This document shows positions 13,976 to 64,000 of a stretch of 64,000 bases of DNA, piece by piece (the first letter of the stretch is position 1; each line of letters starts with the position of its first letter). Below the pieces are notes generated by a model. It ran no database searches, was not told where the DNA came from, and worked only from the letters and a program-made list of their open reading frames with translations. The stretch is from contig NIVC01002353.1 in NCBI GenBank assembly GCA_002269645.1, forward strand, positions 117,575-181,574, given 5' to 3'. Position numbers and translations under genes: made by a program. The DNA is from Macrostomum lignano (taxonomy: Eukaryota).

Positions 13976-14591
13976 TTTTCTGAGGCTTATCAGGCGCACA
14001 CTTTGAGAGGCCGAGACGGGAAGCTCAGCGCAGGCTGGGCGCTTCGTTTAAAGTTGCGGAGCTCCGCTGTCCAGCTAGGATTCTTGGTCACGTGATCCGA
14101 ATGGAAGCCGAGAAATCTGCAGCAAGTTGCTCAGGAGAACTTTTCCTTCCTCTCTGCACTCTGTCCCCTGAGTACACTGGTGCACTCTGAATCGGTCGGG
14201 CAGGCAGAGATGGAGAAAGCGCTGAGCTGCTCCTGTGCGGGAGGATCTGGATTGAACTGGCTGGGGAGGCTGTGATGAAGGATGAAGGCTGGGCTTTCAA
14301 GTGCTCTGCTTGCCTGCCTAAGAAGTGACAAGATGCACTTAGGAGAGAAAAAATTCTTTGAGTTCGTCAGCTTTCGCAAGTATTTCTCCTCCGCGCACAA
14401 TGTCTACTGCGGAAGAAGTGCTGCAAATGTATTTGAAAATCTCTGGAATCAACCTACTGATTTTCATGTATTTAAATTTGTTTAAATTCACTAAATTTTA
14501 CTATGGAAAACTATTTTTCATCTCGTTGATGCTCGAATTGTGACAGTAACCAATGAAAATAATTTAATGATATGTGAAGCAGTTGTAGAGT

Positions 14592-16819
14592 CTACGAGCC
14601 GTCCGAAGTGCCGGCCTGGCCATTCTTAGGCGAAGAAGGCCGGCGCCACCTGAGGCCGCCGCCTCCGTCGCCGTCGGACCGGAAGCCGGCCGCAATGGCC
14701 TCGATGGGGCGGCCCTTGGTCTCGGGCAGGCAGCAGAACAGGAACAGCAGGAAGGCGGCCGTCAGGACGGAGAACGGCAGGAACAGCAGGCTACCCAGGT
14801 GCTTCACGAGCACCGGGAACACCAGACCGACCGCGAAGTTGGCCAGCCAGTTCACCAGCACTCCGATGGCGTTGGCCGCCGACCGCGCCTCCTGCTGGAA
14901 CATCTCCGAGAGCATCAGCCAGGGGATGGAGCCCGGGCCCAGAGCGAAGAACACCACAATGAGCAGGGCAAAGCAGATGCTGGCGTAGGTGAGAGCGCCG
15001 GCCGGCGTGGCGGCTGCGCTGCGGCTGTGCAGGCTGAAGCAGATGGTGAAGCCCACGGAGCTGACGAGCACGCCGAGCAGGCCGGTCAGGTGCAGGCAGC
15101 GCCGGCCCGCCCGGTCCATCAGCGGCACCGTCACGCCGGTCATCGCCACCATCACGCAGCCGACAGCCACCGTGGCAAACTTTGACGCCTGCGGACTGGC
15201 GCCGGCCGCCACGAACAGGTCGCTGGAGTAATAGAAGATCACGTTGATGCCGGACAGCTGCTGGGACAGGTGCAGCACTAGGCCGATGAGCAGCGGCCGG
15301 CGGAGCTCCGGCTGGGAGCAGAGCTTCGCCGCCGTTGCTGACGATGAGGCCGACGACCCAGCGGACCGCTCGGCGTCGATCTCGGCCAGCTCCGCGTCCA
15401 CGAAATCGTGACCCCGTAGAGTGGCCAGCGCGGACCGGGCTGCTGCCTCAGAGCGCCGGGTGAGCAGGAGGTGGCGCGGGCTCTCCGGGCAGCAGGGCAG
15501 CAACGCCAGCTGCAGGAGGCAGGGCGCGGCTGACAGGGCGAACAGCAGCGGCCAGAGGCCCGGCCGCCCCAGCAGCGAGTCGGTGCTGGCTACCTGGGAC
15601 AGCAGAAGTCCGGACACCACGCCGAGCTGGTTGAGCACGCCGAAGCCGCCGCGGAGTCGCCTGGGCGCGGTCTCGCTGATGTAGAGCGGCACAACGCTGG
15701 TGTACACGGCGCTGCAGAACCCGGTGGCGAGGCGACCCAGCACCAGCAGCTCTGGACTGGAGGCGACGCTCGACACGCTGCAGGCGATGGCGGCCGCGAT
15801 GCCGAAGCCGCTGTTGCCGAGCAGTGCGCGGGAGCGGCCGAGCCTGCAGGAGAATGGGGAAGCCAGGTGGTGCGCTGTAGCAGTGCAGCATGGACTTTTG
15901 TAACTAAAGGCAGGCAGTCACTGCCATCCAAAAAGCGAAAAGTGCTTCCTTAGGCCCAGTAGGACTTTGCACAGCGGGTTCAAATTCTACTACTTGTCAG
16001 TAAAATACACTGCCCACTTGTCTCTATGCAGATGTGCCAGTAGTGCGCTATAGTAGTACGAAAGACCAGGATTGTTTGTGTTATTTTGTGCGCTGCATGA
16101 GCTCAGGAATGTTCCGCCGAGCCCGAGGAGATAAGTGTTCTCATAATTAATACAATGTGCAGCCGGCTACTGCAGCGAGTGCGAACCAGATTGCGCCAGT
16201 GCAGGTCAGTTAGCACGTTGTTGGAAGCACGTGTTCCAAGTGAGTCACTGCTCTGACAAGCCTTATGAACATTTCCGACAATTTTGTGTACGTAAACAGT
16301 CAACAAGTTCTTGTTCCCCTGCCTGTCGATACCAAATACATGTAGGCTTTCGGTACTCAGGAAAGACTCAAAGCGATCATGCAGATCAACAAAATAATTA
16401 CACATTAGAGACACCCACCGGAGACTCACTCAACCTCAAATCAGAACACAGAACTCAACCTGCCCACACCTGTCAGCGAGGCAGCCGCCAGTCAGGGCGC
16501 CGCCCATGCCTCCAATGGCGAAGATGGAGACCACGAGAGACCACAGCAGCTCCAGCTGGTAGTCGCTCAGCTGCCGGTCGAACCGGTCCGCCACAGACTG
16601 GTTGAGAAAGCTGACGATGCCGTCCTTGGGGTTGTTGATGACGCCGGTGTTCCAGCCGAAGTGGACGGCGCCCCAGAAGGCGGCCAGCACGGAGAGCGCC
16701 AGGCGCCAAGTGACTCGGTCGCGACTGTCCTGAACTGCGCTGACAGCCGCTTCGGGGGCGGCTTTGGGGGCCGCCTGAGAGGGGGAGAGCAGCTTCTGCT
16801 CGGAACGCTCGCTCTCCAT
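14592..16819 (-). CDS. SLC2A: Facilitated sugar transporter (SLC2A/GLUT class I-like), 2 coding exons (16819-16470, 15843-14592), about 533 aa
   Basis: Motifs FGWNTGVIN, SIFAIGGM, PLYISETAP..LRG, PESPR, QQLSGIN..FYYS, DRAGRR, GPGSIPW, N W.ANF.VG and LPETKG. Phase-2 intron AG|GTGTGG...CCTGCAG|G restores ADR-LGR. Confidence 0.93.
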
Positions 16820-34927: not shown

Positions 34928-35227
34928 CTAACCCTAACCCTAACCCTAACCATAACCCTAAATTTAATATTTGTCTATGAGTTTTTGCATGATGCTTCTA
35001 TGATTTATTGCATAACGCTTCCATTATTTTTTGCATGACGCTTCCATGATTTTTCGCATGACGCTTCCATTATTTTTGCATGACGCTTCTATGATAAACA
35101 TTTTCAATAAGCTACATGAGCTAAGTTATAAGCTACCCTAACCCTAGCCCTAACCCGAATCTTAACGCTATAACCCTGAACCTAACGCTAAACCTAAACC
35201 CTAACACCAACCCTAACACTAACCCTA
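34928..35227. repeat. Degenerate interstitial (CCCTAA)n-like tracts flanking short GCATGACGCTTC repeats
   Basis: CTAACCCTAACCCTAACCCTAACCATAACCCTA at 34928-34960 and degenerate copies at 35135-35227. Confidence 0.7.
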
Positions 35228-36757
35228 CAGCCTGACATCTGCATAAGTTTGTGAAGCGCTAGTAGTATTTTTTAGCTTAGTATCTTAGCGTTGGGGAGCC
35301 AAAAATGCAGTGCAAGTTTTGTAATAAACTAGTAGTTTTAAAAGTAAAAAGTAAAACAAAAGTATTTTTATTTACGAAAGTCCTTATTGTGTAAGATAAT
35401 TATAACATTTTGTTTATACACACTTGAATGACTGTATTTTTTAACTTATACAGTTTCTTCGAAACGCATAATTGAGCAGCAATTAAAATAATTAGTCAAC
35501 TACCCGACGAGGGATAATTGGCTAGCTAGTTACTCATGAGTCATATCCAACTAAAACTGGCCTTTTTAACTGGAAAAGCTAGATAGGCAACTCACTTCAT
35601 CCAGTTGATACTACCTATTCTTTCTTCATTTAACTCGTATTGAAGGACTTATTTATCTAGCTCCAGTTTCTAAACTGAATAGAAACCTGGCAGATAAATT
35701 ACTTCTTGTTATACATAAAAATGATTTTAGGATGAAATTTTATTGATGCATTACTATACTATTTTACCCTCATACTCTACAATTGCTCAGATTTGTTGAG
35801 TAGGTATAACATTTTTTTATAACAACTTGCTTAACTTTTGCACTCCATGTCTTTTTATTGCACTTTCATTTATTTTGTTAGCTTAATATTTTTTGCTTTG
35901 CAATCTTATAATGTACCTTTATTGTTAAATTTTGCTATAATGCTTAAACCTTCATATAATATAAGACCAAATTTCATTATATAGCCATAGGCAATAGTTA
36001 GATAGAGTTTAATATTTTAATATTGTTATTTTTTCTAGAATTTATGTTAGCATTAGTATAGGATAGGCCCTAGGATTTTTCATAGTTACCAAATATGTAG
36101 CATATGTATCATTATAATACTATTGATTTCAAAATATATATAGTTACATTTATATTTTATCCAGTAATTTACTTTATGATCTCTTATGTAGAAAATATAC
36201 TTAGCAACATAGAAAAGTTGCCATCATAGAAGATTTTATCTGTGGTTGCAACTTAGCAACACCATATTATGAATATGGTAGACTTGAGTTAAGAGATAAA
36301 GTGGAGTGGTGTGCAAGGGTTAGATGGATTAAAGCTACCCCAATCAGTTTTCTTGTATCTTTTTTAGAATAGTCTAAGAGAAATTGTTTATTGGTACATA
36401 GTGTAGCAAATTTTCGATGTTGCTAAGTATACTTTTATATCAAAAAGGAAATGCTTGTAGAAAAGTTTTGGATTATTTAAAGCCTGCTTGTTATTATCTT
36501 ATTGCATAAAAATATCATATTTAATTATTTAGGCCTAGAAAGTGTATATAATAAAAATTATTATAATCATTTAATATTTGATAGTATAGTGGTCAATAGG
36601 ATGTAGCTTTTTATTTTAGAATATTTTATAATAATAATAGTTTTTAACCTAGCCATCAATCACATTTTAATCTGTCATGGATTTGACATTTTCTAGCTTT
36701 TATTTTATTTTGAATTACTATTATGAAATAAATCTTAACATCTTCAATATCCCTCAG

Positions 36758-42749
<5,992 letters not shown>

Positions 42750-43794: not shown

Positions 43795-44115
43795 CTGTTG
43801 CAGTTTCTATGCGGTTTTTATGCAATTGCTGTGTAGTTTCTATGCAATTGCTGTGTAGTTTCTATGCAGTTGCTGTGTAGTTTCTATGCAGTTGTTGTGT
43901 AGTTTCTATGCAGTTGTTGTGTAGTTTCTATGCAGTTGCTATGAAGTTTCTATGCAATTGCTGTGTAGTTTCTATGCATTTGCTTTGTTCTCGTATTTTA
44001 TATGCAGTTCGTTGCCAAGCCGCTTTTGAGATTACTATGCAAATGCTAAACCGTTTTTATGAGGTTACTATGCAGTTGCTAAGCAGTTTCTACGAGGTTA
44101 CTATGCAGTTGCTTA
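43795..44115. repeat. Degenerate 22-bp repeat GCAGTTGCTGTGTAGTTTCTAT upstream of RABGGTB
   Basis: Several near-perfect copies at 43830-43975, decaying toward 44110. Confidence 0.8.
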
Positions 44116-44156
44116 CACAAGCGTTGCCATCCGAACGCGCCCGCAAATTTCCGCAG

Positions 44157-46164
44157 CATCGCCCAGCCACCGACATTTCCCTGCCGGCGGACGCGCCGAA
44201 GCAGCTGCTGCCGGAGAAGCACGCCGACTTCCTGTTGCAGTACTGCAGCAGCCAGGACAACTACGAGTACGTCATGACCGAGTACCTGCGCATGTCCGGC
44301 CTCTACTGGACCGCCAGCGCCCTGGACCTCCTTGGCCGCCTGCCCGACCTGCGACAGCGGATGGACGCCGCCGCCTTCTTGCGGGACTGCGCCAGGCCCG
44401 ATGGCGGCTACGGGCCGGCGCCCGGACACGACAGCCACCTGCTGTACACCCTGAGCGCCGTGCAGGTGAGCAGGTGAGGGTGCGGCGGAATGGGTGCGGC
44501 TGGGGTGTCAGGTTAGGACTGGGGTGTCAGGTTAGGACTGGGGTGTCAGGTTGGGACTGGGGTGTCAGGTTGGGACTGGGGTGTCAGGTTGTGACTGGAG
44601 TGTCAGGTTAGGACTGGGGTGTCAGGTTGGGACTGGGGTGTCAGGTTGTGACTGGAGTGTCAGGTTAGGACTGGGAAGTCAGGCTAGGACTGGGGTGTCA
44701 GCCTGGGACTGGGTGTCAGGTTGGGACTGGGGTGTCAGGTTGGGACTGGGGTTTTCGTTGTGTCAGGATGGGACTGGGGTGTCAGGTTGGGACTGGGGTT
44801 TCGGGGTGTCAGGATGGGACAGGGGTGTCAGGTTGGGACTGGGGTACGAGTATAAGGTTGGGACTGGGGTGTCAGCCTGGGACTGGGGTGTCAGGCTAGG
44901 ACTGGGGTGTCAGCCTGGGACTGGGGTGTCAGCCTGGGACTGGGGTGTCAGCCTGGGACTGGGTGTCAGCCTGGGACTGGGGTGTCAGGTTGGGACTGGG
45001 GTGTCAGGCTGGGACTGGGGTGTCAGGACGAAATTTGGGATGTCAGGATTGGGATCTTGTCTCACACAATTGTCAGCTCCAGCCCTCCGCCTACCCCAGG
45101 TGGCTCTGCTGTTCGACCTGCGGGACTCCCTGGACGCCGGGGCCATCGCGGGCTTCGTCCGCGGCCTGCAGCGGCCTGACGGCAGCTTCCAGGGCGACCG
45201 GTGGGGCGAGGTGGACACCCGCTTCAGCTTCTGCGCGCTGGCCGCGCTGTTCCTGCTGGGGCTGGGCGACCGCCTCGACGACCTTGTCGACGCTCGCGCC
45301 GCAGGCGACTTCGTGCTGACCTGCGCCAACTGGGACGGCGGCTTCGGCACCCGGCCGGGCAGCGAGTCGCATTCCGGACAGGTGCGGATCTTGCCTGGCT
45401 ACTCACAGTAGGCAGTGCAGTGTCCCAGCTACTCACAGTAGGCAGTGCAGTGTCCCAGCTACTCACAGTAGGCAGTGCAGTGTCCCAGCTACTCACATTA
45501 GGCAGTGCAGTGTCCCAGCTACTCACAGTAGGCAGTGCAGTGTCCCAGCTACTCACAGTAGGCAGTGCAGTGTCCCAGCTACTCACAGTAGGCAGTGCAG
45601 TGTCCCATCCCAGCTACTCACAGTAGGCAGTGCAGTGTCCCATCTCAGCTACTCACAGTAGGCAGTGCAGTGTTCCAGCTACTCACAGTAGGCAGTGCAG
45701 TGTCCCAGCTACTCACCGCAGGCGCCCGCCCGCAGGTGTACTGCTGCATCGGCGCGCTGTCCATCCTGGGCCGCCTGCACGAGCTGGACGTGGACCGCAC
45801 GGCGCTGTGGCTGGCGGAGCGGCAGCTGGCAAGCGGAGGGCTGAACGGCCGGCCGGAGAAGCTCCCGGATGTGTGCTACTCCTGGTGGGTGCTGGCCTCC
45901 CTGGCCATGCTCGGCCGGCTGTCCTGGATCTCCGGCGAGCGGCTGCTGCGCTTCGTGTGCGCGGCGCAGGACCCGGAGGCTGGCGGCATCGCCGACCGGC
46001 CCGGCGACCTCTGCGACCCCTTCCACACCCTGTTCGGCCTGGCCGGCGCCTCTCTCCTGCGGCTGGGCGGTGACTCGCTGAAGGCCATCAACCCGACTTT
46101 CTGCCTGCCAGTTGACTGTCTGGACAGGCACGGACTGCGGCTGCCGCTCTGGACTGGCGACTGA
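44157..46164 (+). CDS. RABGGTB: Rab geranylgeranyltransferase (GGTase II) beta subunit. Exons 44157-44465, 45100-45381, 45736-46164; initiator Met not encoded at the exon start
   Basis: Motifs [75 protein letters not shown] and [15 protein letters not shown]. Phase-0 introns match. Confidence 0.96.
44500..45020. repeat. Intronic 19-bp G-rich minisatellite GGGGTGTCAGGTTGGGACT
   Basis: Tandem array in RABGGTB intron 1. Confidence 0.93.
45399..45716. repeat. Intronic 30-bp minisatellite CTACTCACAGTAGGCAGTGCAGTGTCCCAG, about 10 copies
   Basis: Fills RABGGTB intron 2. Confidence 0.95.
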
Positions 46165-48300: not shown

Positions 48301-48814
48301 TAATTCCCATAGCAACAACGGCATCCATTAGCAGTGCCGCCACTCACTCTGCTCCGGTTTCTACTCAATGCTTAATGCGCGCGCACCTCTGACTCTCGGG
48401 GAAAAAACCCGGGTTAGATTTATTTTTTGACCGCACTGATTCGGTGGTTGTGCGCAAGATTTCACCTGGGGCTCGAGCGATTCTCACACATGATTGCCAA
48501 ACCCCACGGCACCGTGGTGCAGCTTGACAATGAAAAAGTCAGGGCCGCTGTGCACCCTTTGTGACTTTGAGTTTGTGTGCGAGCTCAGGGGTCAGCGGAA
48601 TGTTCATGACTGCTGGCTTTCTTGCCGGCCTCTGATCGACTGCAGCCTTGATTAGTGTCAGTTCTAAAGCCACTTTGATGCATTTCCAAATCTCACAGCT
48701 TTTTCCTCCATGTCATAGTAAATTCAAATTCAAAAGCCCCTTCTCAAACATCACAAACCCAAACACGGACGCATTTCAGGTGTGTTCAACTCGACTGACG
48801 CTCAATTCTTTCCG

Positions 48815-51800
48815 ATGGCCGCTGCTGAGCAAATGCGAGCTGCGCTGGAGGCCGCCGACTGCGAGCAGCTGCTGAAGCTGTGTCGGCAGCTGGACTCCAA
48901 CCTGACAGTTTCGGCCGGCTACTTTGAAGGTCCGCCTCACGTGAGAGAAATTTCGGCGGCTCACCACGTCGCTAGCAAGCCGTACGGACTTGACTGTCTG
49001 GAGGTGCTGATCGACCGGTTCGGAGCTGCATGTTTGACATGCAGAGACGAGTTCAACTACACACCTGTGCACTTGGCCGCCATTAAGCAGAGCCAGGACA
49101 GTCTGAAGCTCATTCACATGACTCTTGGCAGCGACTGTTTTTATGAAAAAGGAAGATTTGGTCGCTCAGTGATTCACTGCGCTGCCATGAATAAGCATAG
49201 CAACAAGGCACTGAAGTGGCTGATCGGTGAGTTCGGGTCAGACAATCTAATGGCGAAGGATGACAATGGTTCGACAGTCGTTCATCTATCAGCTGAGTTT
49301 CAGAGCTCAGATTCGATGGAATTCATTAAATCAATGCTCGGTTCCGACTGCTTCCGTCAGAACGGGTGGCTTGGTCACACCGCAGTTCACTGTGCTGCTT
49401 GTACGAGCGTAACAAGGTCTCAAACTCGTCGCTCAAGTGGCTGATCGATGAGCTCGGCTCAGTCTCTCTCATGAAGGAGGATGACGATGGATCGACAGTC
49501 GTTCATCTGGCCGCCGGGGCTCAGAGCTCAGATTCGATGCAGTTGATTAAATCGGAGCTCGGTTTCGACTGCTTCCGTCAACGTGGGTGGCTTGGTCGGA
49601 CACCAATTCACTGTGCTGCTTGTAACAAGGTCTCAAATTCGTCGCTCAAGTGGCTAGTCGATAAGATCGGTTCAGACTCTCTCATGGAGAAGGATGACGA
49701 TGGATTCCCAATCGTTGGTCTGGCCGCCGCGTTTCAGAGCTCAGATTCGATGCAGTTTATAAAATTAAAGATCGGTTCCGACTGCTTCCGTCAGCGCGGG
49801 TGGCTTGGTCGCACCGCAGTTCACTGTGCTGCTTTTAACAAGGTTTCAAACTCGTCGCTCAAATATCTAGTCGATGAGATCGGTTCAGACTCTCTCATGG
49901 AGAAGGATGACAATGGATCGACAGTCGTTCATCTGGCCGCTGTGTTTCAGAGCTCAGATTCGATGCAGTTTATAAAATTAAAGATCGGTTCCGACTGCTT
50001 CCGTCAGCACGGACGGCTTGGACGCACTGCAGTTCATTGTGCTGCTTATAACGAGGTCTCAGACTCGTCGCTCAAGTGGCTGATCGGTGAGCTCGGCTCA
50101 GACTCTCTCGTGGAGAAAGATTACATCGGATTGATGGCTTGTCACCTTGTCGCAGCTCATCAGGGTGAAAACTCCATGGACTTGATGAAGAGCCTGCTCG
50201 GAGTTAAAACATTCCCTTTGCGTCATCGTTTTCGCCAAACTGCAGCCCATTTTGCTGCACTAAATACAGGCAGCAATGCGACACTGGCCTGGTGTGTCAG
50301 AGAACTGGGCTCCCAGTGCCTGACTCGTGTAGACAGAGACGGCAACACTCCAGTTCACTATGCCGCTCAGCATCAAGATGAGAAATCGATGCAGCTGGCG
50401 GTGAGCTCACTCGGACCGGACTGTCTCAAGCTGCCAGGTGACAAGCAGCGAACTGCAGTTCACTTCGCGGCCATCAACACCAACAGCGTCTCTGCGCTAA
50501 GGTGGATTGTCGGTCAGCTGGGAGCCGACTGTCTGAAGCTGAGGGACGCCGAGGGCATCACGACTGCGCACCTGGCAGCTCAGCACCAAAGCGAGGACTC
50601 GCTGCGGCTCATCAGGGACTCGCTGCGGCTCATCAGGGACTCGCTGGGCGTCGCCGCCTTCGACTTGCAGGACCGGCAGGGACAGTCGGTGGTGGACTAT
50701 GCAAAGAAGAACAACCGGTCGGAGCGGATGCTGGGCTGCATCGCCGAGCTGCGGGAGGAGGAGAGGCTAAATAGGTGAGCTGCCTGCTGCTTAAAGACGC
50801 CATAGCGTTGAGGCCATTTAGTATATTTGGATATTACGTACTGTATAATACACAGCAGAGCAAACCTTAGTCAAGCTTATTTTAACTTGTATAGCGAGTC
50901 CCGTTATCGATTGCTTTTTCGTTAGCGGGATTATCGTTCCCGTTTACCTGCCGTAGCCCGAACAACAACGACAACAACAACAAAGAAAATAATGTCAACA
51001 AAGCAATAATAACAGTAACAACAAAAACAACAGAAAAGCACTGACAGACGCAATGCATATACCAAAGTTTTTAGGTTCTTTAGGACACTTTAGGTTCTTG
51101 ATTTATTTATTAAGCTATGGTAAAAATAAGGACGGTCAAATTCCTACTTCTATTCGATTCGATTTAACCTCGGGAAGAAGGAGAAACAGGATGAAGTCTG
51201 GCTTCGTTGGTTTTGCTCAAATCAATCGAGTCTTCTCAATTTTCAGGACGTGGGAAACAAGTTGACATTCACAGTGGTTTTCAGACTTTTGTTTAACTTT
51301 GACAATGAGCATCAATATTCATTTGTATGTCAGCTTTCTGGTTTGGTTTAGGATTTGACTTACTCAATATACCTGTGAATGATAATTCGTTTTCAAAGTA
51401 TGCAAAGTGTGATTTTATGTGAAATTATGATTGTACATACTTTGTCAACAACAATGATTTTGGAAGTTCCAATACATGTACATTGGGGACCGCGGGTCCA
51501 CACCTGATACAGCGGTAAGAAAGACCAGCAGTCCCAAAACTGCATTGCAATCAAAGCAGTCACGTTTTTCTGCTTCCAGAGCTCCGGCTTCCTTGGACCC
51601 GAGCTTCAGCAGCTGGACCTTCTAGCCTGACGATCGGAGAGGGCGGGTTCGGCAAGGTGTATAAGGCCTTCACCAATAGGCAGCAGACGGTTGCTGTCAA
51701 AATCGTCGAGCCCGTTCGCTGCAGCGATCCGTCGAAGCTAGAGATGGCGGTGGAGCAGGAGAGGCGGGGCTTCGAGATCCTCGTGCGCATCCGGCACCGG

Positions 51801-52473
51801 AACATCGTGCAGTTTCTCAAGACCGAGCGCTCAGCGGAGAACGGGTTCTGCATCTTCACGGAGCTCATCGCAGGGTGCAGCCTCCTCGATCTGATGAACC
51901 GGCTGAACAAGCCGTTCGATGAGCCAGCAGTGAGGCGTTTCTCGCATCAAGTGAGCTGTCACTCCTGCCTCTGCCACAGTGTGAATACTGAGCGAACAGC
52001 TGACTCTTCGACCCCGAACCCCTTTGCAGATCTGCAGGCGCTCAACTTCCTGCACTGTGAGCACATCGTCCACCGAGACATCAAGTGCTCCAATATCATG
52101 CTCACCCACGAGAGCGTCATCAAGCTGATCGACTTCGGACTCGCAAAGGAAATCGTCTCAGCAGCGCAGGGAGCCGCGACCTACACCCTCGGAACTGTTC
52201 ACTTCATGGCCGCAGAGCTGCTTCTTGATGACGAGAATGACCGGCTGGTGTACACTCCGAAGACAGATGTGTGGGCGTTCGGCTGCACCGTGTTCGAGAT
52301 GCTGGAGAGGAGGCCACCAAAAGGTCAGAGTGACTTCAAAGGGCATGCCGCAGCTGCCAGACGGGACCTCCGACACTCTGAGAGATTTCTACCGGCGCTG
52401 CGTGATGAAGGAGCCTGGAGAGCGGGCGGATACTGCGGAGCTGCTGCGACACAGCTTCCTGCAGAGCGGGTAA
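48815..52473 (+). pseudogene. Ankyrin-repeat/MAP3K-like kinase, copy 1. Ankyrin exon 48780-50774, kinase exons 51580-51950 and 52030-52473; several frame breaks (pseudogene or assembly error)
   Basis: About 17 ankyrin repeats (T..H.AA). Donor AG|GTGAGC (phase 2) matches acceptor TTCCAG|A, giving R-APASLDPSFSSW. Kinase motifs GEGGFGKVY, VAVK, HRNIVQF, HRDIKCSN, DFG, GT..FMA.E and DVWAFGCTVFEM. Frame breaks at about 49400 (8-nt insertion), 51625, 52030 and 52320. Confidence 0.75.
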
Positions 52474-53270
52474 GCGTGCGGACTCGAGCTTTGCACTGCA
52501 CAGTTTGAATCACAGAATATTTGCGGTAAATTCTGTAAACTTTCACTATTCTACTATTTTGTTTTTTACTGCTTTATTGTTTAACTGTTTTGCTGTTTTA
52601 GTGCTATTGACCGACTGAATGTCGGATTTTTATTCATTCTCACCTTGTTGCTCTTATTATTCAACTTTAAGCTGCTGCATTGTTCTGCTGTATGCTGCTA
52701 AAGTCGTTGTCTGCTGCACTTGACCATGTTTTTCTGTTCCACGAGCGTCTACTGTAATGCCTTTATATTGTTCTGCCGTTTCGCTGTTTGCAAGTAAAAT
52801 TCAGAATGCAGCAGTTTTCAAGTCAGTTATACGCTCGTAAAAAGTGATTTTAATTTTTGCTTTGCACTTTTATTTGAAAATAATAAGTTGTGTGACTTGC
52901 CCGGTATCTCTCGGGACGCAGATTTGATTCAGATTCGCTTTTGATGCCACTCAACGATTCCACAGCGACTCCAGCACGCCTCAGATACAACTCTACGACG
53001 CCCCAGAGTCGTCGCACATAATAAAAACGCCTCAAATTGACTCTTACGAGTATGCGACTCGTTTGACAACTTTTTGACGTCTTGTCACGGCTAGAGTTAC
53101 TTCTTTTCTATTTTATGTGCTAGCTGCAACGACTCTCTGAAACTATTCTGTTGCTGCGCAAGTGACTCTGGGACGCTTCTCGCTTCTTGGCACTGGTTGA
53201 GCCATCCGCTCATTTATAACTGTACATGTATAGGTCCCCTGCCCTACCTGTCGTTAAGCTCCTCAGTCAC

Positions 53271-54025: not shown

Positions 54026-55707
54026 ATGCCAGCTGGAATTCTAGCGCTGCTGTTCGGCTGCATGGCTGCTGTGACAGGTGAGGCTTCTCATGCACGTTGC
54101 AGAAGCATTGCCGGTCAAATGCACTGAGTGCCTGCGAAACATCAAGAATTGAAAATTTTTAGAAGTTGTCAACCACATTTGTTAACTGTTGTGATGGCGC
54201 AGCCGCAGTTTGCAATACACAGAATCTCCTCAAACCAACAGGCGCCCACCAATCCAGCCTCTTCACCGCTGTCACCGGACCCGTCCTGATCGGCAACGCC
54301 TCCAGCAGCGAACTCGTCAACCTGACCGGCGTCCAGACCCGGCTGAAGTGTCTGGCAGCGTGCCAGCGGAAGGGCTGCCTGCTGGCTTCGCTCATCCCCA
54401 GCTCGCGCGTCTGCCAGCTGCTGCTGCTCAACGACGCGTCTCAGGCGCCGGGACCGGCCGGGACTCACGTGCAGAGACTCGTGGGCTCCGAGCCCGGCGC
54501 CAGGCTGTGGGCGGCCGAGAACTTCACGGAGCTGATGCTGATGAGGAAGAGGATGCTGAATGTCACCATTGAGCTCAGAAGTGAGGAAAAGCCCATGTTT
54601 GCAAAGTTCTGTGCTTCGAGCATTTGTTGCACCTCGACATCTGATCTGCAGCGCCCTCTCTCACTGCAGACAGCGGCACGGGCAGGGCCGGCTCCATCCA
54701 GTCCGTGACGATCCCCTCGACCGGCTGCTACCGGATCGAAGTGTCGGGCGCCAGAGGCGGCACCAACTCCTTCTCAGGCAAGGCTGGCGGCAGCGGCGCC
54801 TTCGTGTCCGGCGCCTTCAACCTGACGGCCGGCACCCAGCTGAGCGTCGTGGTCGGACAGGCCGGCGGTCTTCCCAGCTCCCTGCACAGCGGAGGCGGTG
54901 GAGGCGGCGGCAGCTTCGTGTTCAGGACGGCAGATGAGCTGCTGCTGGCTGCAGCCGGAGGCGGCGGTGCCGGGACCTACGGCTCAGCTGGTGAGTCAAA
55001 ATTGCTTCAGGAAAACTGGAGATAGCAGATTTTCTAAATGCTCTCTGATATTTAGGCGTTTATGTTATTCTTGTGTCTGGTTTTCAGTTGATGTCAGTTT
55101 TCGAGAGATTTGACATCAGCTTCAAAACACAAAAGCAAACCGAATGGCACCGATCAAAATTAATCTGTTTTTCTATTAGCCGGTTAAACTGGATTTATTT
55201 AAAATTAAGTCACGAGCGACGAATTCGCAGGCCTGCCCGGAGAGGCCGGCGTCAACGGCTCCGTCGCGAATCCGAGCGGAAACAGCCACGGCGGCAGCAA
55301 CGGACAGCCACAACTCCAGCGCCATGACCAGCAACCAGAACCTCGCTGGCTGCGGCGCCGGCTGGCTGGGGAAGCCGGTGTGCACCAGGCGGGGACCGGA
55401 CGACGGTGACGGAGGCGGCAGTCGGGCCGAAGGCTGGCTGGGCGGCGACGCCGGCGGCTCCAACACCGGCGACGGCGGGTTCGGCGGCGGCGGAGGCGGC
55501 GGCACGGTGAACCCCAACTATGGCGTTGCCGGAGCCGGCGGCGGCTTCAGCGGAGGCGCCACCAGCTTCTCGGGGAGCCCTCCAGGAGGTGGCGGCGGCT
55601 CCTTCTGCTCCGGCAGCGGCTGCAGCGGCACCACTGGCGGCAACGCCGGCCAGCACGGCCTGGTGGTCATCCGGCTGGTCGATCCGCTGAGCAACTCTTG
55701 CGAGTGA
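54026..55707 (+). CDS. Secreted protein: signal peptide, PAN/apple-like Cys module and ALK/LTK-type glycine-rich (GR) domain. Exons 54026-54077, 54242-54580, 54670-54990, 55231-55707 (one frame break near 55305)
   Basis: MPAGILALLFGCMAAVTG signal; C..AC...C...S....S..CQL PAN-like spacing; VTIPSTGCYRIEV.GA.GG...GG.GA...G.F.L..G..L.VVVGQ.G, GGGGGSFV, LL.AAGGGGA, GGFGGGGGG, GAGGGFSGG, GGGGSF and G.V.I. All three phase-1 introns match. Confidence 0.85.
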
Positions 55708-58694
55708 CGATTTCATGGAAACTGGACATTGTCCAACGGAACTGAGACTGTGTTGTTTTGGAGTGGAATGCTGTGGCAGTTTTTTGGGAAATTTTCAAGT
55801 GTTTACTTTTTTATTGGCGACCGTTTCCGCTACAAGCCGAACACTATCAAGTCCAGGTGAAACTTTCACGGTGGAGTGACTTTGGGACCTGCTTTTATGC
55901 CTAATACGCTTGACTCTGCAGTGGGCGAGACCAGCAAAGTAGCAATACTCTTTGCCTTAAATTAATCTCGTGTTGTATTCTTGCACTTTTGTTGCAGTGC
56001 AAGGGCATCCCATTCTTTAGTCGTTGTGGTGACTCAGTTAGTCCGCCTTGCTTCATGCGTTATGCGCTAGACTGTGATTTTTTGTTTGGTTTAAGCCTTA
56101 GCCTCCCCCCGCAGTTCTCCTTGTTGTCACTATTCTCGTGCCTTGCGTGTACTTTTTGTTGTTTACTGCATTCTGATTGGCTGGGCCGGCAGCGGGCTGG
56201 TGTTTAATTTTTTGCAGGGGGTGGTGGGCTGGAGGGCTTGCGGACCCCCTTCCTCGGGCCGTGGCGCGGGGTGTCGTTTTCGTTGTCTTGGGATTCGGAG
56301 CTAGACTAGAGGGGTACATTGGCACGGCACTGGCTTCATTGTATGCCAGCCTGCACCACCGCAGACATCACGGGTCTGTGCATCAACACTTGTATGTAGC
56401 CTGTGGGCTTTGGGATCCAGGGATACACTACTCTCTTGATATCTCAAATACTTTAGCTTGCTAGTACGAGCGAGTTCGGATGAGGGGGGGTTTAAAGTTG
56501 CATTTGTTACTTCGTCAATAATCCTATTAAATCTATATTATCCCAAAAATCGCCATAAAGGGGTCGACTTAGTTCGAAAATGTTTGAACATAATACTTTT
56601 ACCTGCTGCTTGCTTAATCCTGAGTCAATCACTTTCAGTGCAAAAAAGTTCGCTGCCTCCATAATCCCAATGACTCATCTCTAAAACTTCTCAACTTACA
56701 AAATGCAACCCACCGCTACAATTCTCGCCTCAGCCGGACAAGGGTGAAGGTCAAATTCTTTAGTCAACTGGCCTCGGGTACACAAGACTCTACTGAGCTG
56801 ATGAGAGAGAAAAGACATGTTTATGTGCTCACACCTACTTTCTCGTGCTCAAGATCCAAGTCTCCCGATGCTGCCTGCCTGCCTGAGTACACCGCGTTTA
56901 CTCCTCCCGTCCCATCCTCGACTCGTCTTGCCATGGAAAGAGTGATTAAAACTAGATAAAAGGACACCCGCTACTTCCAATATGTTCAGAGTTCCCGAGC
57001 TCGCCAGTTTGATCCACTGCACTAAAATTAATAACTTCAATGGCTGATGCTGAGCTGTCTTATTTTCAGCAGGAGTCTGGTGAATTAGACTACATCAAAA
57101 AATGGATTTAACAGTCCAGAATTTGTTTCGTAGAAAGTGACCGGAATGCCAACCGAGCCAAAAGATGATGAGAGACGAACAAGCGGTAAAAAAATCGGCC
57201 AACAGCTTCGCGATTGGACCGATCGAGCTGACCAGCATCGAAGAGTTGAAAGCCGTCGGTTATCGGATCTAAGGCTTCATCAAGGAATCTGAACGCTATC
57301 AAGGAGATTATTCACGACAGCCAGAGCCAAGGTTTGTCACTGTGTATAAGCGCGAGAGGAATTCTCCAGTGCATGAAGATGGTGCTAAAAATACCAATAT
57401 CGAATCTTTTTAAAGCAGATTGGCTTTACACCGGCTTGGGTTAATTTCCTAGTCCGGGTCTCCAGTTCTCCAGCGCAGCCGAATTTCCCTTTTTACATCT
57501 AGGAGCAATGAATAGGCATCTGACAAAGGCTGCTGATTGCTGCTGATGGAGAATGAGGAGCTGGCTCAGGCCGATTTCCGATCCTTGGCTTCTATTGAAC
57601 ATTTAGGGTGTTTTTTGATTGCTTGAACTCGGGAGCAAATTTTATAGCGAACCAGATGCTGCAGTATCCGTTTTTATACGTTGAAGTAGGGGTCGCAAAG
57701 TTTTGAGGTTGGGGCAAGCTATACCAAGCTATTCAACCCAATATTAGAAACCTCTACATGCATTGTTAAAGAACAAAAAGTATGGCTCATTTTTAACCCC
57801 GGCAACAAGAAGTTTCTGCTGGCGGAGCCGCTATTGAAACCGCGATTGGCATCACGTGACCAGGCCTGGATCCCGGCTTCCATAGCGAGAACACCAGCCA
57901 GGGAGCAGTGAGTGATCCGCCTTGCAGCTCAGACCGAGGAGCTCAGAATTCAGGGACTCCCAGGCACAGGTGCTCGGGATTTCAGATTCCCGGAAATGCC
58001 CAGAAAGTGACTGACTTTGACTCTGATCCAACTCTGCCGAACCCGATCACCGGACCTGATCTTCGAGCAGCATAACTGATACATGAGTCCGGTCCATCAG
58101 CAGCAGTTAGATTGACTCAATCTAGATTGACCCATCTGTGCAGCAGCCAGTGCTCAAGTTCGCCTCTCTGCAAGCATCTTCATCGCCAGCCTCCGGCTCT
58201 GAGCCCCACCCTCCCAGAGAATTGAGCAGCTCTAATAGCTCTATAGTGCCGAAATTCTGTGCTCAAACGTGCTCGCCTCATCATCAAGGCTCTCCGTCCC
58301 TCTGCAATCGTCCCTCTCAAAATGCAAAACGCGCGGCATTTTGGGCCAAGTTTTGCACCTGCTCGATACCCCTGAGTACTCTATTGTTTGCTGCCGTGGC
58401 CCTGCGGCTCCACCAATGCAGAGCTCGAAGGCCCGCAGCCGCCTCTCCGCCTTCGGCCCCATCTCAGCCTCCAGCCTCCGACTCACCCATTGTGCTGCAG
58501 CTTCGCTCTGTCCCCATGCCTGCCCCGAGCTCAGAAGCCTCTCAGCTGAGTACGCGCTTGCGGGGCAACGGCAGTGTGCAGAAGCTCTAAGAATCGATGA
58601 GGCGGTTTAAGGAGCAGCCAGCAACCGCTCGGCCTGAGACCGGCCACACTGCTCAGCTGGAGGCGCTGCCAATTTTGCTACTCGAATTCGGCTG

Positions 58695-59060
58695 TGTTGC
58701 CTGTGCTGAAGGTGAGTCTGTGTGGTTTCTGTGTGCTGCCTGTGCTGAAGGTGATTCTGTGTGGTTTCTGTGTGCTGCCTGTGCTGAAGGTGAGTCTGTG
58801 TGGTTTCTGTGTGCTGCCTGTGCTGAAGGTGATTCTGTGTGGTTTCTGTGTGCTGCCTGTGCTGAAGGTGAGTCTGTGTGGTTTCTGTGTGCTGCCTGTG
58901 CTGAAGGTGATTCTGTGTGGTTTCTGTGTGCTGCCTGTGCTGAAGGTGAGTCTGTTTGGTTTCTGTGTGCTGCCTGTGCTGAAGGTGAGTCTGTGTGGTT
59001 TCTATGTGCTGCCTGTGCTGAAGATGAGTCTCTGTGGTTTCTGTGTGCTGCCTGTGCCTG
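58695..59060. repeat. 39-bp tandem array GTGCTGCCTGTGCTGAAGGTGAGTCTGTGTGGTTTCTGT, about 9 copies, with alternating GAG/GAT variants
   Basis: Directly visible. Stop-free in several frames. Confidence 0.95.
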
Positions 59061-60212: not shown

Positions 60213-60416
60213 TTAGCCGCACTAATTCGGTAGTCTTGAGATTTGTGAGTTTGTGCCTGCGTGCGAGCCACCCTGATACATTCCGAAATTTTGCAGATTA
60301 CATTGTCAATCTCATGGCAATCAAGGGACATTCGATGCAAAGCCCCTCAATTCTCAAACACAAACACGGACGAATTGCAGGTCGTGTTCAACTCGACTGA
60401 CGCTCAATTCTTTCCG

Positions 60417-63400
60417 ATGGCCGCTGCGGATCAACTGCGAGCTGCGCTGGAGGCCAACGACTGCGAGCGGCTGCTGAAGCTGTGCCGGCAGCTGGACTCC
60501 AACCTGACAGTGTCGTCTGGCAAATTTAAAGACCCGCCTCACACGAGAGAAATGTCGGTGACTCACCACGTCGCTAGCAAGCCGTACGGACTCGACTGTC
60601 TGGAGGTGCTGATCGACCGGTTCGGAGCTGCATGTTTGACATGCAGAGACGAGTTCAACTACACACCTGTGCACTGGGCCGCTATGGAGCAGAGCCAGGA
60701 GACCCTGCAGCTCATCCACGTAAACCTGAGCAGCGACTGTTTTTATGAAAAAGGAAGATTTGGTCGCTCAGTGTTTCACTGTGCTGCCGTGAATGAGCAT
60801 AGCAACAAAGCTCTTGAGTGGCTGATCGGTGAGCTCGGCTCAGACTCTCTCATGGAGAAGGATGACAATGGCTCGACAGTCGTTCATCTGGCCGCCCAGT
60901 GTCAGAGCTCAGATTCGATGGACTTCATTAAATCGAAGCTCGGTTCCGACTGCTTCCGTCAGCGCGGGTGGCTTGGTCGCACCGCAGTTCACTGTGCTGC
61001 TTGTAACAAGGTCTCAAACTCGTCGCTCAAGTGGCTGATCGATGAGCTCGGCTCAGACTCTCTCATGAAGGAGGATGACAATGGTTCGACAGTCGTTCAT
61101 CTGGCCGCCGGGGCTCAGAGCTCAGATTCGATGCAGTTCATTAAATCGGAGCTCGGTTCCGACTGCTTCCGTCAGCGTGGGTGGCTTGGTCGGACACCAA
61201 TTCACTGTGCTGCTTGTAACGAGGTCTCAAACTCATCGCTCAAGTGGCTGATTGGCGAGCTCGGCTCGAACTCTCTTGTGGAGAAGGACGACAATGGATC
61301 GACAGTCGTTCATCTGGCCGCCCAGTGTCAGAGCTCAGATTCGTTGGAATTCATTAAATCGAAGCTCGGTTCCGACTGCTTCCGTCAGAGCGGATGGCTT
61401 GGTCGCACCGCAGTTCACTGTGCTGCTTTCAACAAGGTCTCAAACTCGTCCCTCAAATGGCTGATAGATGAGCTCGGCTCAGACTCTCTCTTGGAGAAGG
61501 GTGACAATGGATCGACAGTCGTTCATATGGCCGCCGAGTTTCAAGGCTCAGATTCGATGCAGTTCATTAAATCGAAGCTCGGTTCCGACTGCTTCCGTCA
61601 GTGCGGGTGGCTTGGTCGCACCGCAGTTCACTATGCTGCTTGCAACAAGGTCTCAAACTCGTCGCTCAAGTGGCTTATCGATGAGCTCGGCTCAGACTCT
61701 CTCATGGAGAAGGATGACGATGGAGTTACAGTCGTTCGTCTTGCCGCACAGTGTCAGGGATCAGATTCGATGGAGTTCATTAAATCGAAGCTCGGTAACG
61801 ACTGTTTCCGTCAGCGGGGATTTCTTGCAGGCACCGCAGTTCACTATGCTGCTTGTAACAAGGTCTCAAACTCATCCTTAAAGTTCCTGATCGATGAGCT
61901 GGGCTCCGATTCTCTCATAAAGAAGGTTGAAGATGGATCGACAGTCGTTCATATGGCCGCCGAGTTTCAAGGCTCAGATTCGATGCAGTTTATTAAATCG
62001 AAACTCGGTGCCGACTGCTTCCGTCAGCGCGGATTCAAGGGACGCACCGCAGTTCACTGTGCTGCTTGTAACATCAACAGCGTCTCTGCGCTAAGGTGGA
62101 TTGTCGGTCAGCTGGGACCCGACTGTCTGAAGCTGAGGGACGACGAGGGTATCACGGCTGCGCACCTGGCAGCTCAGCACCAGGACGAGGACTCGCTACG
62201 GCTCATCAGGGACTCGCTGGGCGTCGCCGCTTTCGACTTGCAGGACCGGCAGGGACAGTCGGTGGCGGACTACGCAAAGAAGAACAGCCGGTCGGAGCGG
62301 ATGCTGGGCTGCATCGCCGAGCTGCGGGAGGAGGAGAGGCTGCGAGCCTCGATGGAGGACAACCGTCTGCATAGTAGTTCTGCTGAGGGACAACAGGATG
62401 GGTGAGCCGCCTGCTTAAAGGGACAATTAGCGTTGCGGCCAGAGTAAAAGCTGGTATAAGAGCACCCTCTTAGATAATGTGCTTAGATAATGTGCTTAGA
62501 TAATGTGCTTGTATATGGTGCATACGACAGATTCAATTGCAAGGAGTCTCAAGCATTGATTAGCGGGTTTGTCGATTAAAGAAGTCGTGAATTCTTTTGA
62601 ATATCGAGCCGCGTCTGTGTTGTCAGACGATTCGGTTTTCCACAGTTACTGCAAGTTTTGCGTCTTGCAGCCTCACAGTTGCTGTGGCCGGACTGGCCGC
62701 ATCTGTAGCAGGTGAGGAAATGGCTTGCTGACTGTGGTGGGCGGTCCAAGTGACTTCTGCTTTGCTGCTGTTGCCGATTTTTTTGCTGCTGCGTGGCGCT
62801 TTGCGTGCTAATCGCGGCGACGGTCGAATCCTTCGACAGCTCGATTGCCGTTGGTTGCGCTTCTGAAGCTTCGTGGGCGTCGCTGAGCAAAATGTCGGAT
62901 TCTCGCAGTAGTCGGCGACGAAGTGCGTCAGAGAGGCAGGTGGCGACCAACTGATCACGAATGATGGAATCGCGAAGTTCTCCGAAGTCGCAGGTGTCAG
63001 CGGGTGCTTTCATCCGAGCGTGCCAGCTGTCTATGGTCTCTCCCAGCTGTTGTGTGCACTGCCGAAACTGATACCGTGCAAAGACCAGGTTTTTGGTCGT
63101 TGAAGTACTTGGTCAGTTGAGTCAGAAGCCTCTTCAGCAATTCTCTTGTGTCTGCGTGATTGGCTTGCACTTCTCTGGTGATCACCACTTACGACGTATC
63201 CGCTTATGCACTTATTCTGTTTCTTCTGAGATTCCAGATGCTCGATTGAATTTTGAAAGTCGCTGGATGGACTGAATGACTCGGGTGGTGGTTGAAGAAT
63301 AATGTTTGCCATTGTACTTATTTATTCCCCATTTCGGCAGCAATCCCCCATTGCTTCAGTCTTCCAACATTTTCCAGTGTGAAGCCGTCTCTGGACCCCG

Positions 63401-63768
63401 CCTTCTCCAGCTGGGAGTTCCTCCTCGATGTTGACGGCAACACGCAGCTGCTCGGAGCAGGCGGTTTCGGCCAGGTGTACAAGGCGTTCACCGATAAGCA
63501 ACAGACTGTGGCTGTCAAGATCGTCAAGCTGGAAGGTGCCAGCAGTGCCAGCCTGATAGACGAGGCCATCGAGAAGGAGAACGCGGAGATCTCAGTCCTG
63601 AAGGCCGTCCGGCACCCGAACATCGTGCAGTTCCTCAAGTCTGAGCGCATCAAGAAGGGCGAGCTGTGTATCTTTACCGAGCTGATCTCCGGCCACAGCC
63701 TCTCTGAGCTGATGCAGCTGCAGCGACGGCCCTTCGATGAGGCAGCAGTGAGGAACTTCTCCAAGCAG
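60417..63768 (+). CDS. Ankyrin-repeat/MAP3K-like kinase, copy 2 (intact as far as seen). Ankyrin exon 60381-62401, kinase exon 63378-63768; gene continues past the window
   Basis: Uninterrupted ankyrin ORF with about 17 repeats. Donor GG|GTGAGC at 62401 (phase 2) matches TTTCCAG|T at 63377, giving G-VKPSLDPAFSSW...GAGGFGQVY..VAVK..E..HPNIVQF. The next donor CAG|GTGAGA is at the same codon as in copy 1. Confidence 0.85.
62576..63250 (-). mobile_element. Decayed Ty3/gypsy-type gag fragment inside the ankyrin-kinase intron
   Basis: Q.GETIDSW.ARMK..A..CDFG...DSIIRDQLV......LRRRLLRE, followed by zinc-knuckle-like CYRCGQSGH and CSNCGK. Stops and frameshifts upstream; no pol seen. Confidence 0.75.
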
Positions 63769-63931
63769 GTGAGATCCCACACCACCCATCCAGCAGTGAG
63801 GACTTCTCCAAGCAGGTGAGATCCCACACCACCCCATACAGCAGTGAGGGACTTCTCCAAACAACTCAGATCCCACACCACCCCATGCAGCAGTGAGGGA
63901 CTTCTCCAAGCAGCTCAGATCCCACACCACC
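63743..63931 (+). repeat. Four copies of an about 48-bp unit spanning the kinase exon end and its splice donor
   Basis: CAGCAGTGAGG..CTTCTCCAAGCAG|GTGAGATCCCACACCACCC at 63743, 63791, 63839 and 63888. Confidence 0.92.
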
Positions 63932-64000
63932 CCTGCTCACTCGCTCCCCAACTCACAGTTCTGCACAGCGCTCCACTTCCTGCACAGCCGCAGTCCCGTC

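Follow-up and report, generated by a model that had tools for sequence, protein, structure and literature searches.

How does an array of closely related ankyrin repeats come to differ from one module to the next, and what might such an array do? The question is raised by a gene near the end of a 64,000-nucleotide stretch of the Macrostomum lignano genome (contig NIVC01002353.1; this whole stretch is the window). The window holds two tandem paralogues in which ankyrin repeats (ANK) precede a kinase: copy 1, at ~48.8–52.5 kb, and copy 2, which runs from ~60.4 kb to past 64 kb. An initial annotation had pictured the repeats of copy 2 as a mosaic of modules that are reshuffled or converted and that vary at predicted binding positions, like a natural library of designed ankyrin repeat proteins (DARPins). 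Its observations hold once some details are corrected, and its reading is supported: every check it had proposed that was feasible gave a favorable outcome. Taken as a whole, the evidence is best explained if the copy 2 array is a rapidly diversifying, recombination-shuffled ankyrin recognition surface on a kinase gene, and we consider this probable. Three other loci were compared with the window: L001 (NIVC01002192.1), its colinear homologue; L002, the P0001 gene, with seven full modules at 92% protein identity; and L003, the P0013 gene, with three modules. Below, both window copies and their L001 counterparts form the W family, and the arrays of P0001 and P0013 are called P1 and P13.

The copy 2 array consists of six in-frame tandem modules at 60807–62084 on the plus strand. 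The unit is 213 bp, or 71 aa, composed of ankyrin repeats of 35 and 36 aa, and not the 210 bp and 70 aa first assigned to it. Tandem Repeats Finder (TRF) places 5.9 copies of a 213-bp period at 60817–62073 with 86% matches, and translation in 71-aa steps from 60807 likewise yields the six double-ankyrin modules that had been proposed. All of the variants originally listed for them are present: QC, GA, QC, EF, QC and EF in order; CNK, CNE and FNK; EKDDN, KEDDN, EKGDN and KKVED; and RGWL, SGWL, CGWL, RGFL and RGFK. Module 1 (QC/CNK) spans 60807–61019, module 2 (GA/CNE) 61020–61232, module 3 (QC/FNK) 61233–61445, module 4 (EF, HYAAC) 61446–61658, module 5 (QC, GFLAG, HYAAC) 61659–61871 and module 6 (EF, GFKGR) 61872–62084. 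Identity between modules is 78–91% for DNA (mean 84.5%) and 70–87% for protein (mean 78.5%), so the description “near-identical” was too strong; module 6 is the most divergent, at 78–83% DNA identity to the others. With 33 of the 71 positions differing among the six modules, the scaffold is thus conserved but not invariant. The alternation of QC and EF hinted at a two-module higher-order period of 426 bp, which we rejected: modules 3 and 5 (84%) and modules 4 and 6 (83%) are not more alike than other pairs, and a period of this length is absent from the TRF output.

Pfam matches of the copy 2 open reading frame (ORF) to Ank_2 (E=3e-48) and Ank (E=5e-33) place it among the ankyrin-repeat proteins, and the G-x-T-x-x-H-x-A-A register was fixed by HMMER alignments to Espin and NOMPC. 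An AlphaFold2 (AF2) model that starts with m0, a divergent doublet ahead of the homogeneous array, and extends through module 5, built on a 16-sequence family alignment, gave a predicted local distance difference test (pLDDT) score of 94.3 and a predicted template-modeling (pTM) score of 0.88. Its top Foldseek matches were AnkB, NOMPC, ankyrin-1 and Espin-AR, with a probability of 1.00. A single-sequence run on the whole ANK exon reached a pLDDT of only 54 and was discarded in favor of the family-alignment run. The six modules stack as one continuous solenoid.

Where, then, do the modules differ? In the DARPin design of Binz and Plückthun, positions 2, 3, 5, 13, 14 and 33 of each repeat are reportedly randomized, in 33-aa repeats between N- and C-terminal caps. 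Before any counting, we fixed a surface set made up of the DARPin-randomized positions 2, 3, 5, 13 and 14 and the last residue of both repeats (module codons 18, 20, 21, 23, 31, 32, 53, 55, 56, 58, 66 and 67). Of these 12 positions, 11 vary in copy 2, versus 22 of the 59 elsewhere, and the amino acid variation of the surface set is reached by 81 of 20000 random 12-position sets; the same permutation gave 10/20000 for the W family, 44/20000 for P1 and 11/20000 for P13. Entropy across 82 modules of 15 paralogues amounts to 2.87 bits at the surface set and 1.67 elsewhere (p=2e-4), and the set includes all four of the most variable positions. The hot positions recur, moreover, between independent arrays (Spearman 0.33, p=0.006, and 0.27, p=0.03). 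On the AF2 model, the surface set and the hottest codons (31, 53, 55, 56, 63 and 66) lie at three kinds of site: in the hairpin loop that precedes helix 1 of each repeat, inside helix 1, and where this helix ends on its C-terminal side. The amino acid differences between modules are concentrated on the β-hairpin/finger loops and on helix 1, at its face and its C-terminal end, and these parts form the canonical ligand-binding groove of ankyrin domains. Codon 63, which sits between H and AA at position 10 of the second repeat, is hot yet lies outside the DARPin set, and helical periodicity suggests that it shares a face with positions 13 and 14. The claim that variable sites are focused and not scattered is upheld by these results, and that of an almost invariant scaffold is not, given the 22 variable positions outside the surface set. 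For the same reason the DARPin-library analogy survives in part: variation is enriched at the six positions per repeat, but it is not confined to them, and codon 63 comes in addition.

Whether such variation has been selected was addressed through ratios of non-synonymous to synonymous rates (dN/dS, or omega), estimated for each array from parsimony counts on trees built by the unweighted pair group method with arithmetic mean (UPGMA). In P1, omega is 3.98 at the surface and 0.50 in the scaffold (p=2e-4 for a surface value above 1), and in P13 the values are 4.87 and 0.58 (p=7e-4). In the W family, they are 1.19 and 0.37; the surface value is not significantly above 1, and the scaffold value indicates purifying selection. 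Counts made without a tree and pooled for the three young arrays (P1, P13 and L001 copy 2) gave 3.7 at the surface versus 0.70 (p=4.5e-5), and 12 disjoint nearest-neighbor module pairs, which are independent of a tree, gave 2.0 versus 0.40 (p=0.0012; Fisher odds ratio 8.8). A comparison of non-synonymous and synonymous counts between the surface and the rest yields a Fisher odds ratio of 4.6 (p=8e-8). Hot codons differ at 2–3 nt while adjoining synonymous sites are identical; codon 63 of P1, for instance, reads TGT, TGG, AAA, CGT, TGG, CAT and TTT. Diversifying selection at the predicted binding face is thus well supported at the level of the family. The prediction that dN/dS would not lie below 1 everywhere holds for the surface in P1, P13 and the module pairs, but in the W family the excess is not significant. 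For the copy 2 array, there is a strong contrast between surface and scaffold but no proof of an omega above 1.

These data also bear on a different explanation, in which the gene encodes an ordinary scaffold or adaptor whose modules are kept alike by recent tandem duplication and concerted evolution, and whose surface differs because it is least constrained, with no adaptive gain. A W-family surface omega indistinguishable from 1 would be expected under such neutral turnover, as would the variable scaffold positions of copy 2, and the decay of copy 1 into a pseudogene (described below) means that family members can be dispensable. Neutral turnover does not, however, readily produce surface values significantly above 1 in P1, P13, the pooled young arrays and the independent pairs, nor multi-nucleotide changes at hot codons beside identical synonymous sites, nor the same hot positions in independent arrays. 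We therefore regard it as rather unlikely, and favor a diversifying recognition surface.

The arrangement of the modules points to recombination. With a 30-nt window, the pairwise homoplasy index (PHI) test gives significant p values of 0.008 for copy 2, 0.007 for the two window copies together and 0.0055 for the W family, and 69 of 120 pairs of informative sites in copy 2 are incompatible. On the P0001 array, the test is not significant (p=0.35–0.45), so that this array looks like the product of recent duplication and point change and not like a mosaic. Within copy 2, module 4 is mosaic in that it shares codons 28–39 with module 6 and Y63 with module 5. Copy 1 has, as the initial annotation held, the same repeat count as copy 2 (four homogeneous modules plus two divergent doublets), different variants (AF, VF and YNE), and terminal doublets, at 50065–50490, that have no equivalent in the 6+0 arrangement of copy 2. 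The GA-type module 2 was also correctly singled out as nearly identical between the copies, at 96% versus 83–91% for the adjoining units. Identity between the copies is 95–98% over ~60940–61240, which includes this module, versus ~87% elsewhere, with 10 differences in 248 positions at 61003–61250 and 129 in 1011 elsewhere (p=2.5e-6); the high-identity stretch, roughly 300 bp long, fits a conversion tract. Finally, module 6 has a hybrid make-up. The four codons at its end (INSV) are those of the second divergent doublet still kept by copy 1 and L001, which indicates that the divergent doublets were lost from copy 2 by in-register deletion or recombination.

Comparison with L001 extends this picture to whole loci. 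L001, which may be an allele or a homeologue, has flanks 93–97% identical to the window, yet the doublets are arranged as 5+2 versus 6+0 in copy 2 and as ~3+2 versus 4+2 in copy 1, so module order is not fixed. Among the copy 2 modules, the first alone can be paired with a clear L001 orthologue (module 1 of L001 copy 2, 97% DNA identity); modules 2–6 reach 92% at most. Between the two window copies, the ANK exons share 88.6% DNA identity (60352–61715 versus 48751–50121), but the next kinase exon shares only 73%. The kinase exon of window copy 2 is instead 89% identical in protein to the P0001 kinase, versus 58% to the copy-1/P0002-type kinase, whereas L001 copy 2 bears an intact copy-1-type kinase. 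The swap is seen in the alignments of window 63325–63936 to L002 12327–12946 and of L001 15816–16903 to window 51483–52523. Different effectors on like ANK exons imply recombination inside the intron between family members. The array has thus been built and remodeled by in-register unequal recombination and gene conversion, both within the gene and between paralogues, and homologous loci differ in how many modules they have, in the order of these and even in the type of kinase attached.

It might be objected that such differences are errors of assembly, with modules placed in the wrong order, or that the whole gene is dead sequence. The genome is indeed full of minisatellites, public gene models of the locus are messy (P0004 and P0165), and the adjoining copy 1 is broken. 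But the window-type arrangement occurs in the public models P0004, P0024 and P0165, which hold the same module sequences and the same junctions between modules 1 and 2, 3 and 4, and 4 and 5; the L001-type arrangement occurs in P0178, and the 5+2 form is carried by NCBI contig NIVC01002192.1 and also by UniRef model A0A1I8H2C8. The difference in repeat number between the window and L001 is thus seen in public M. lignano gene models too, and this recurrence of both arrangements in independent models counts against mis-assembly. As for dead sequence, the ANK exon of copy 2 is open over 1985 nt with conserved splice signals, and the scaffold omega of 0.37 speaks for purifying selection. Artefact seems improbable on these grounds. 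A further alternative, that the germline copies are donor cassettes for somatic conversion or assembly, as in lamprey variable lymphocyte receptors (VLRs), draws by analogy on the tandem cluster of related modules and on the evidence of conversion. The germline gene is already a complete ORF, capped at both ends, however, no incomplete VLR-like germline gene with flanking partial cassettes is visible, and the exchanges that are seen are fixed differences between assembled loci; we hold somatic diversification to be very improbable. Germline recombination acting on a recognition surface continues to fit best.

What kind of gene carries this array? The copy 2 ORF (60261–62405) encodes 714 aa, and its ANK exon (60417–62401, plus strand, like all copy 2 features below) is 1985 nt of unbroken frame, from the first ATG past a conserved acceptor-like CAG to the donor GG/GTGAGC (phase 2). 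It encodes, in order, an N-terminal helical region, a divergent first doublet, the six modules, a C-terminal cap doublet and a helical linker. The first doublet, m0 (60594–60806; DCLEVLIDRF...HCAAVNEHSN), stands outside the homogeneous array, scoring 54.8 against a hidden Markov model of the module versus 142–156 for modules 1–6. The cap doublet (SALRWIVGQL...) and the linker (...AELREEERLRASMEDNRLHSSSAEGQQD) occupy 62085–62401, up to the donor. An intron at 62402–63377, ending in ...TTTTCCAG, separates the ANK exon from the first kinase exon (63378–63768), which was located by tblastn and encodes the Gly-loop GAGGFGQV and VAVK. A second intron (63769–63958) consists of a 49-bp minisatellite (TRF, 63743–63933), and the next kinase exon begins at 63959 (FCTALHFLHSRSPV) and is followed to 64000, the gene continuing past the window edge. 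The ANK–kinase junction is in frame, with compatible donor and acceptor phases (EGQQD-G-VKPSLDPAFSSWEF), and the copy 2 gene appears, from its sequence, to be intact.

Several features of these introns and flanks are of note in their own right. The intron between the ANK and kinase exons contains, on the minus strand at 62576–63013, a gag-like ORF with a CCHC zinc knuckle (CYRCGQSGH...CSNCGKPN), and a similar gag-like tail is fused to the public model P0175; the ORF in the intron may be linked to the kinase swap. The 49-bp minisatellite begins within the kinase exon, its unit made of the last ~25 nt of the exon plus the splice donor, with GT changed to CT in later units; there are 3.9 copies in the window (63743–63933) and roughly 22 in the P0001 gene (L002 12750–13842). 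Upstream of copy 2, a 39-bp minisatellite (58693–59057) has 9.4 copies in the window; its counterpart in the homologous locus (L001 ~10069–11390) has some 30 or more.

Copy 1 has fared differently. Its ANK exon (48815–50774, plus strand) comprises the four homogeneous modules (49205–50064), the two divergent doublets and a C-terminal cap, and its kinase exons lie at 51580–52469 on the same strand. An 8-bp insertion, GTACGAGC, at 49401–49408 frameshifts the ANK exon; neither copy 2 nor the L001 counterpart has this insertion. The kinase part carries a TTG-to-TAG nonsense codon (51623–51625) and, right after it, a 20-bp deletion (~51633), both of which are also found in L001 copy 1. Since the kinase lesions are common to the two loci and the ANK frameshift is limited to the window, the kinase part of copy 1 died first. 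Judged by these lesions, copy 1 is a pseudogene in the window. In its C-terminal cap, a 21-bp tandem duplication (50595–50646; 2.5 copies, 100% identical) adds an extra DSLRLIR, which is single in copy 2 and L001. In L001 copy 1, module 2 (L001 536–712) lacks 36 bp, a deletion that keeps the frame but takes away the hairpin and the beginning of helix 1, joining SSLKWLIDELGSDSLM directly to AAQFQ....

The kinase of copy 2 is represented within the window by its N-lobe only (GAGGFGQV, VAVK), and the full-length homologues P0001 and P0002 carry HRDIKCSN, DFG and APE/AAE. The best solved-structure matches of the P0001 and P0002 kinases are SLK, STK10 and MST, all of which are STE20-like, and by these sequence criteria the family kinase is probably of the STE group. 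The homologues P0001, P0002, P0010 and P0013 all have ANK followed by a kinase, and Pfam finds ANK with Pkinase in P0002 (Pkinase E=1.7e-52) and ANK with Peptidase_C14 in P0006 (E=1.3e-24). Most family members combine an N-terminal ankyrin solenoid with a C-terminal, STE-like Ser/Thr kinase, several have ANK only, and one paralogue has a caspase. That paralogue, P0006 (UniRef A0A1I8F2E4), has the same cap–module–cap ANK array followed by a caspase domain with QACRG; it is a gene model and possibly a fusion artefact. If it is not such an artefact, free-living M. lignano may possess an ANK-caspase. No NACHT or NB-ARC domain came up when the window ORFs, P0002 and P0006 were scanned with Pfam, and the precomputed Pfam lists of 16 M. 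lignano homologues include none. Every close protein homologue of the copy 2 ORF is from M. lignano. A query with the N-terminal cap returned 25 representative proteins with E<1e-30; all eight of the cap-covering matches that were looked up are from M. lignano, and a mosquito protein was one of two others without cap coverage. The gene family seems, from such matches, to be restricted to Macrostomum. Literature searches found no earlier description of an M. lignano ANK-kinase family or of its hypervariability, and nothing usable on the loss of NOD-like receptors (NLRs) in flatworms.

If the array is a recognition surface, it would be a germline-encoded and fast-diversifying one for proteins. 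Shuffling of modules, each with its own set of contact residues, would create new composite binding grooves, and binding of a putative ligand would be coupled to the kinase, or to the caspase in paralogues. Such an arrangement would follow an intracellular sensor–effector logic, suited to biotic or non-self interactions. Ligand recognition by the array is suggested by what is known of ankyrin structures, and a role in immunity, allorecognition or something else is conjectural. A bolder and more tentative idea, to which we give much less weight than to the recognition surface itself, is that M. lignano has a germline intracellular receptor class of its own: a hypervariable, module-shuffling ankyrin sensor wired without a nucleotide-binding oligomerization domain (NOD) to an STE kinase in most cases and to a caspase in at least one. 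This class might be a flatworm counterpart of NLRs and of fungal receptors with highly internally conserved (HIC) repeats, and serve in pathogen sensing or allorecognition. RNA interference, transgenesis and inbred lines exist for M. lignano, so that the sensor–effector idea is directly testable.

Several points weigh against reading copy 2 as a diversifying recognition surface. First, because the W-family surface omega does not significantly exceed 1, neutral drift at unconstrained surface residues is possible for the copy 2 array, and selection was gauged by parsimony counting, not by likelihood site models, on alignments that are small and affected by recombination. Second, the solvent exposure of the variable residues was derived from secondary structure and DARPin homology, not computed from coordinates. 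Third, scaffold positions vary too, which makes the DARPin analogy a loose one. Fourth, L001 may be a homeologue or a paralogous locus instead of an allele. Finally, splicing of the ANK exon to a P1-type kinase exon is inferred from phase and homologues, not from RNA.

The window as a whole is rich in minisatellites and has genes with introns. Between the two ANK-kinase copies, an unrelated, glycine-rich ORF (54705–55025; and 54166–55707) matches the ALK/LTK glycine-rich domain PF12810 (E=6e-9). A prenyltransferase β-subunit gene at 43908–46164 (PF00432, E=3e-41, last exon) has introns packed with 11-, 19-, 30- and 13-bp minisatellites, and a P-type cation ATPase gene at 36677–41585 contains a (CTGT)51 intron array. 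Interstitial telomere-like hexamer arrays, first of CTAACC and then of ACCCTA, lie at 34928–35227 and flank 23-bp and 46-bp repeats. On the minus strand are genes for a major facilitator superfamily (MFS) sugar transporter (14592–15776) and a haloacid dehalogenase (HAD) hydrolase (13211–13999), as well as a long ORF (7347–9023) with a signal-peptide-like start, MDIKLCLGVLLLLAAVTGSCQG, that consists nearly entirely of Tyr/Ser-rich coding repeats (a 30-bp unit in 23.6 copies and a 96-bp unit in 8.3 copies) and has no Pfam match.

How does the copy 2 array compare with known systems? With DARPins, it shares a capped, tandem, consensus-like scaffold in which variation is enriched at the design positions; it differs in being natural, in its repeats of 35 and 36 aa, in the extra hot position, in the varying scaffold and in the fusion to an enzyme. 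Arrays of this kind amount to a natural data set on the ankyrin positions that tolerate diversity or are selected for it, including one outside the DARPin set. Among animal ankyrin-kinases, ILK, TNNI3K (both with N-terminal ANK), RIPK4/ANKK1 and DAPK1 are TKL- or CAMK-group kinases, each encoded by a conserved single-copy gene whose repeats are few and non-homogenized. ILK and TNNI3K have the ANK-then-kinase order of copy 2, but the M. lignano family differs from all of these by its STE-like kinase, its lineage-specific expansion and its homogenized, variable repeats. Lamprey VLRs assemble leucine-rich repeat modules somatically from cassettes. They are alike in that recombining solenoid modules vary a concave surface, whereas the M. 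lignano genes are complete in the germline and change on an evolutionary time scale, the copy 2 exon being open all the way from N- to C-terminal cap.

Two systems described in the literature come closer. Horkan et al. 2024 (PMC11463336) described platyhelminth ANK-caspases, with an N-terminal ankyrin array as pro-domain, which they reported to be specific to parasitic flatworms. Paralogue P0006 resembles these proteins; copy 2 differs in having a kinase instead of a caspase, and hypervariability of ANK modules does not figure in that study (PMC11463336). The closest known kind of array is the HIC repeat of fungal NLR-like proteins, also called STAND proteins (signal transduction ATPases with numerous domains). 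In these, Dyrka et al. 2014 (PMC4986451) found ANK, TPR and WD repeats with high internal conservation, polymorphic repeat number, shuffling of repeats both inside a paralogue and from one paralogue to another, and, on the concave ANK face, positive selection at inner helices and hairpin loops; high internal conservation was found in just 0.8% of metazoan repeats. Their criterion asks that the repeats of a protein be at least 85% identical over 100 aa or more; copy 2 falls short of it (78.5% in protein), but L001 copy 2 (90%) and the P0001 array (92%) surpass it. Diversifying selection at the concave face is likewise seen at the level of the family (P1, P13, pooled arrays and module pairs), although it is not significant in the W family alone. 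Fungal HIC/STAND repeats, including the Podospora HNWD genes (Chevanne et al. 2010, PMC2873952), resemble the M. lignano arrays in intragenic similarity, concerted evolution, shuffling and variable repeat number, and fungal NLR-like proteins also have modular effectors that include kinases. The M. lignano family differs in the animal host, the lack of a NOD, the N-terminal position of ANK with a C-terminal effector, the 71-aa double-repeat unit and the STE-like kinase. Concerted evolution together with diversified binding residues marks genes of non-self recognition, such as the fungal NLRs, the Podospora het genes and the lamprey VLRs, and is rare in animals according to Dyrka et al. The same regime appears in the animal M. 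lignano, where the ankyrin solenoid is joined to a kinase or, in one paralogue, to a caspase.

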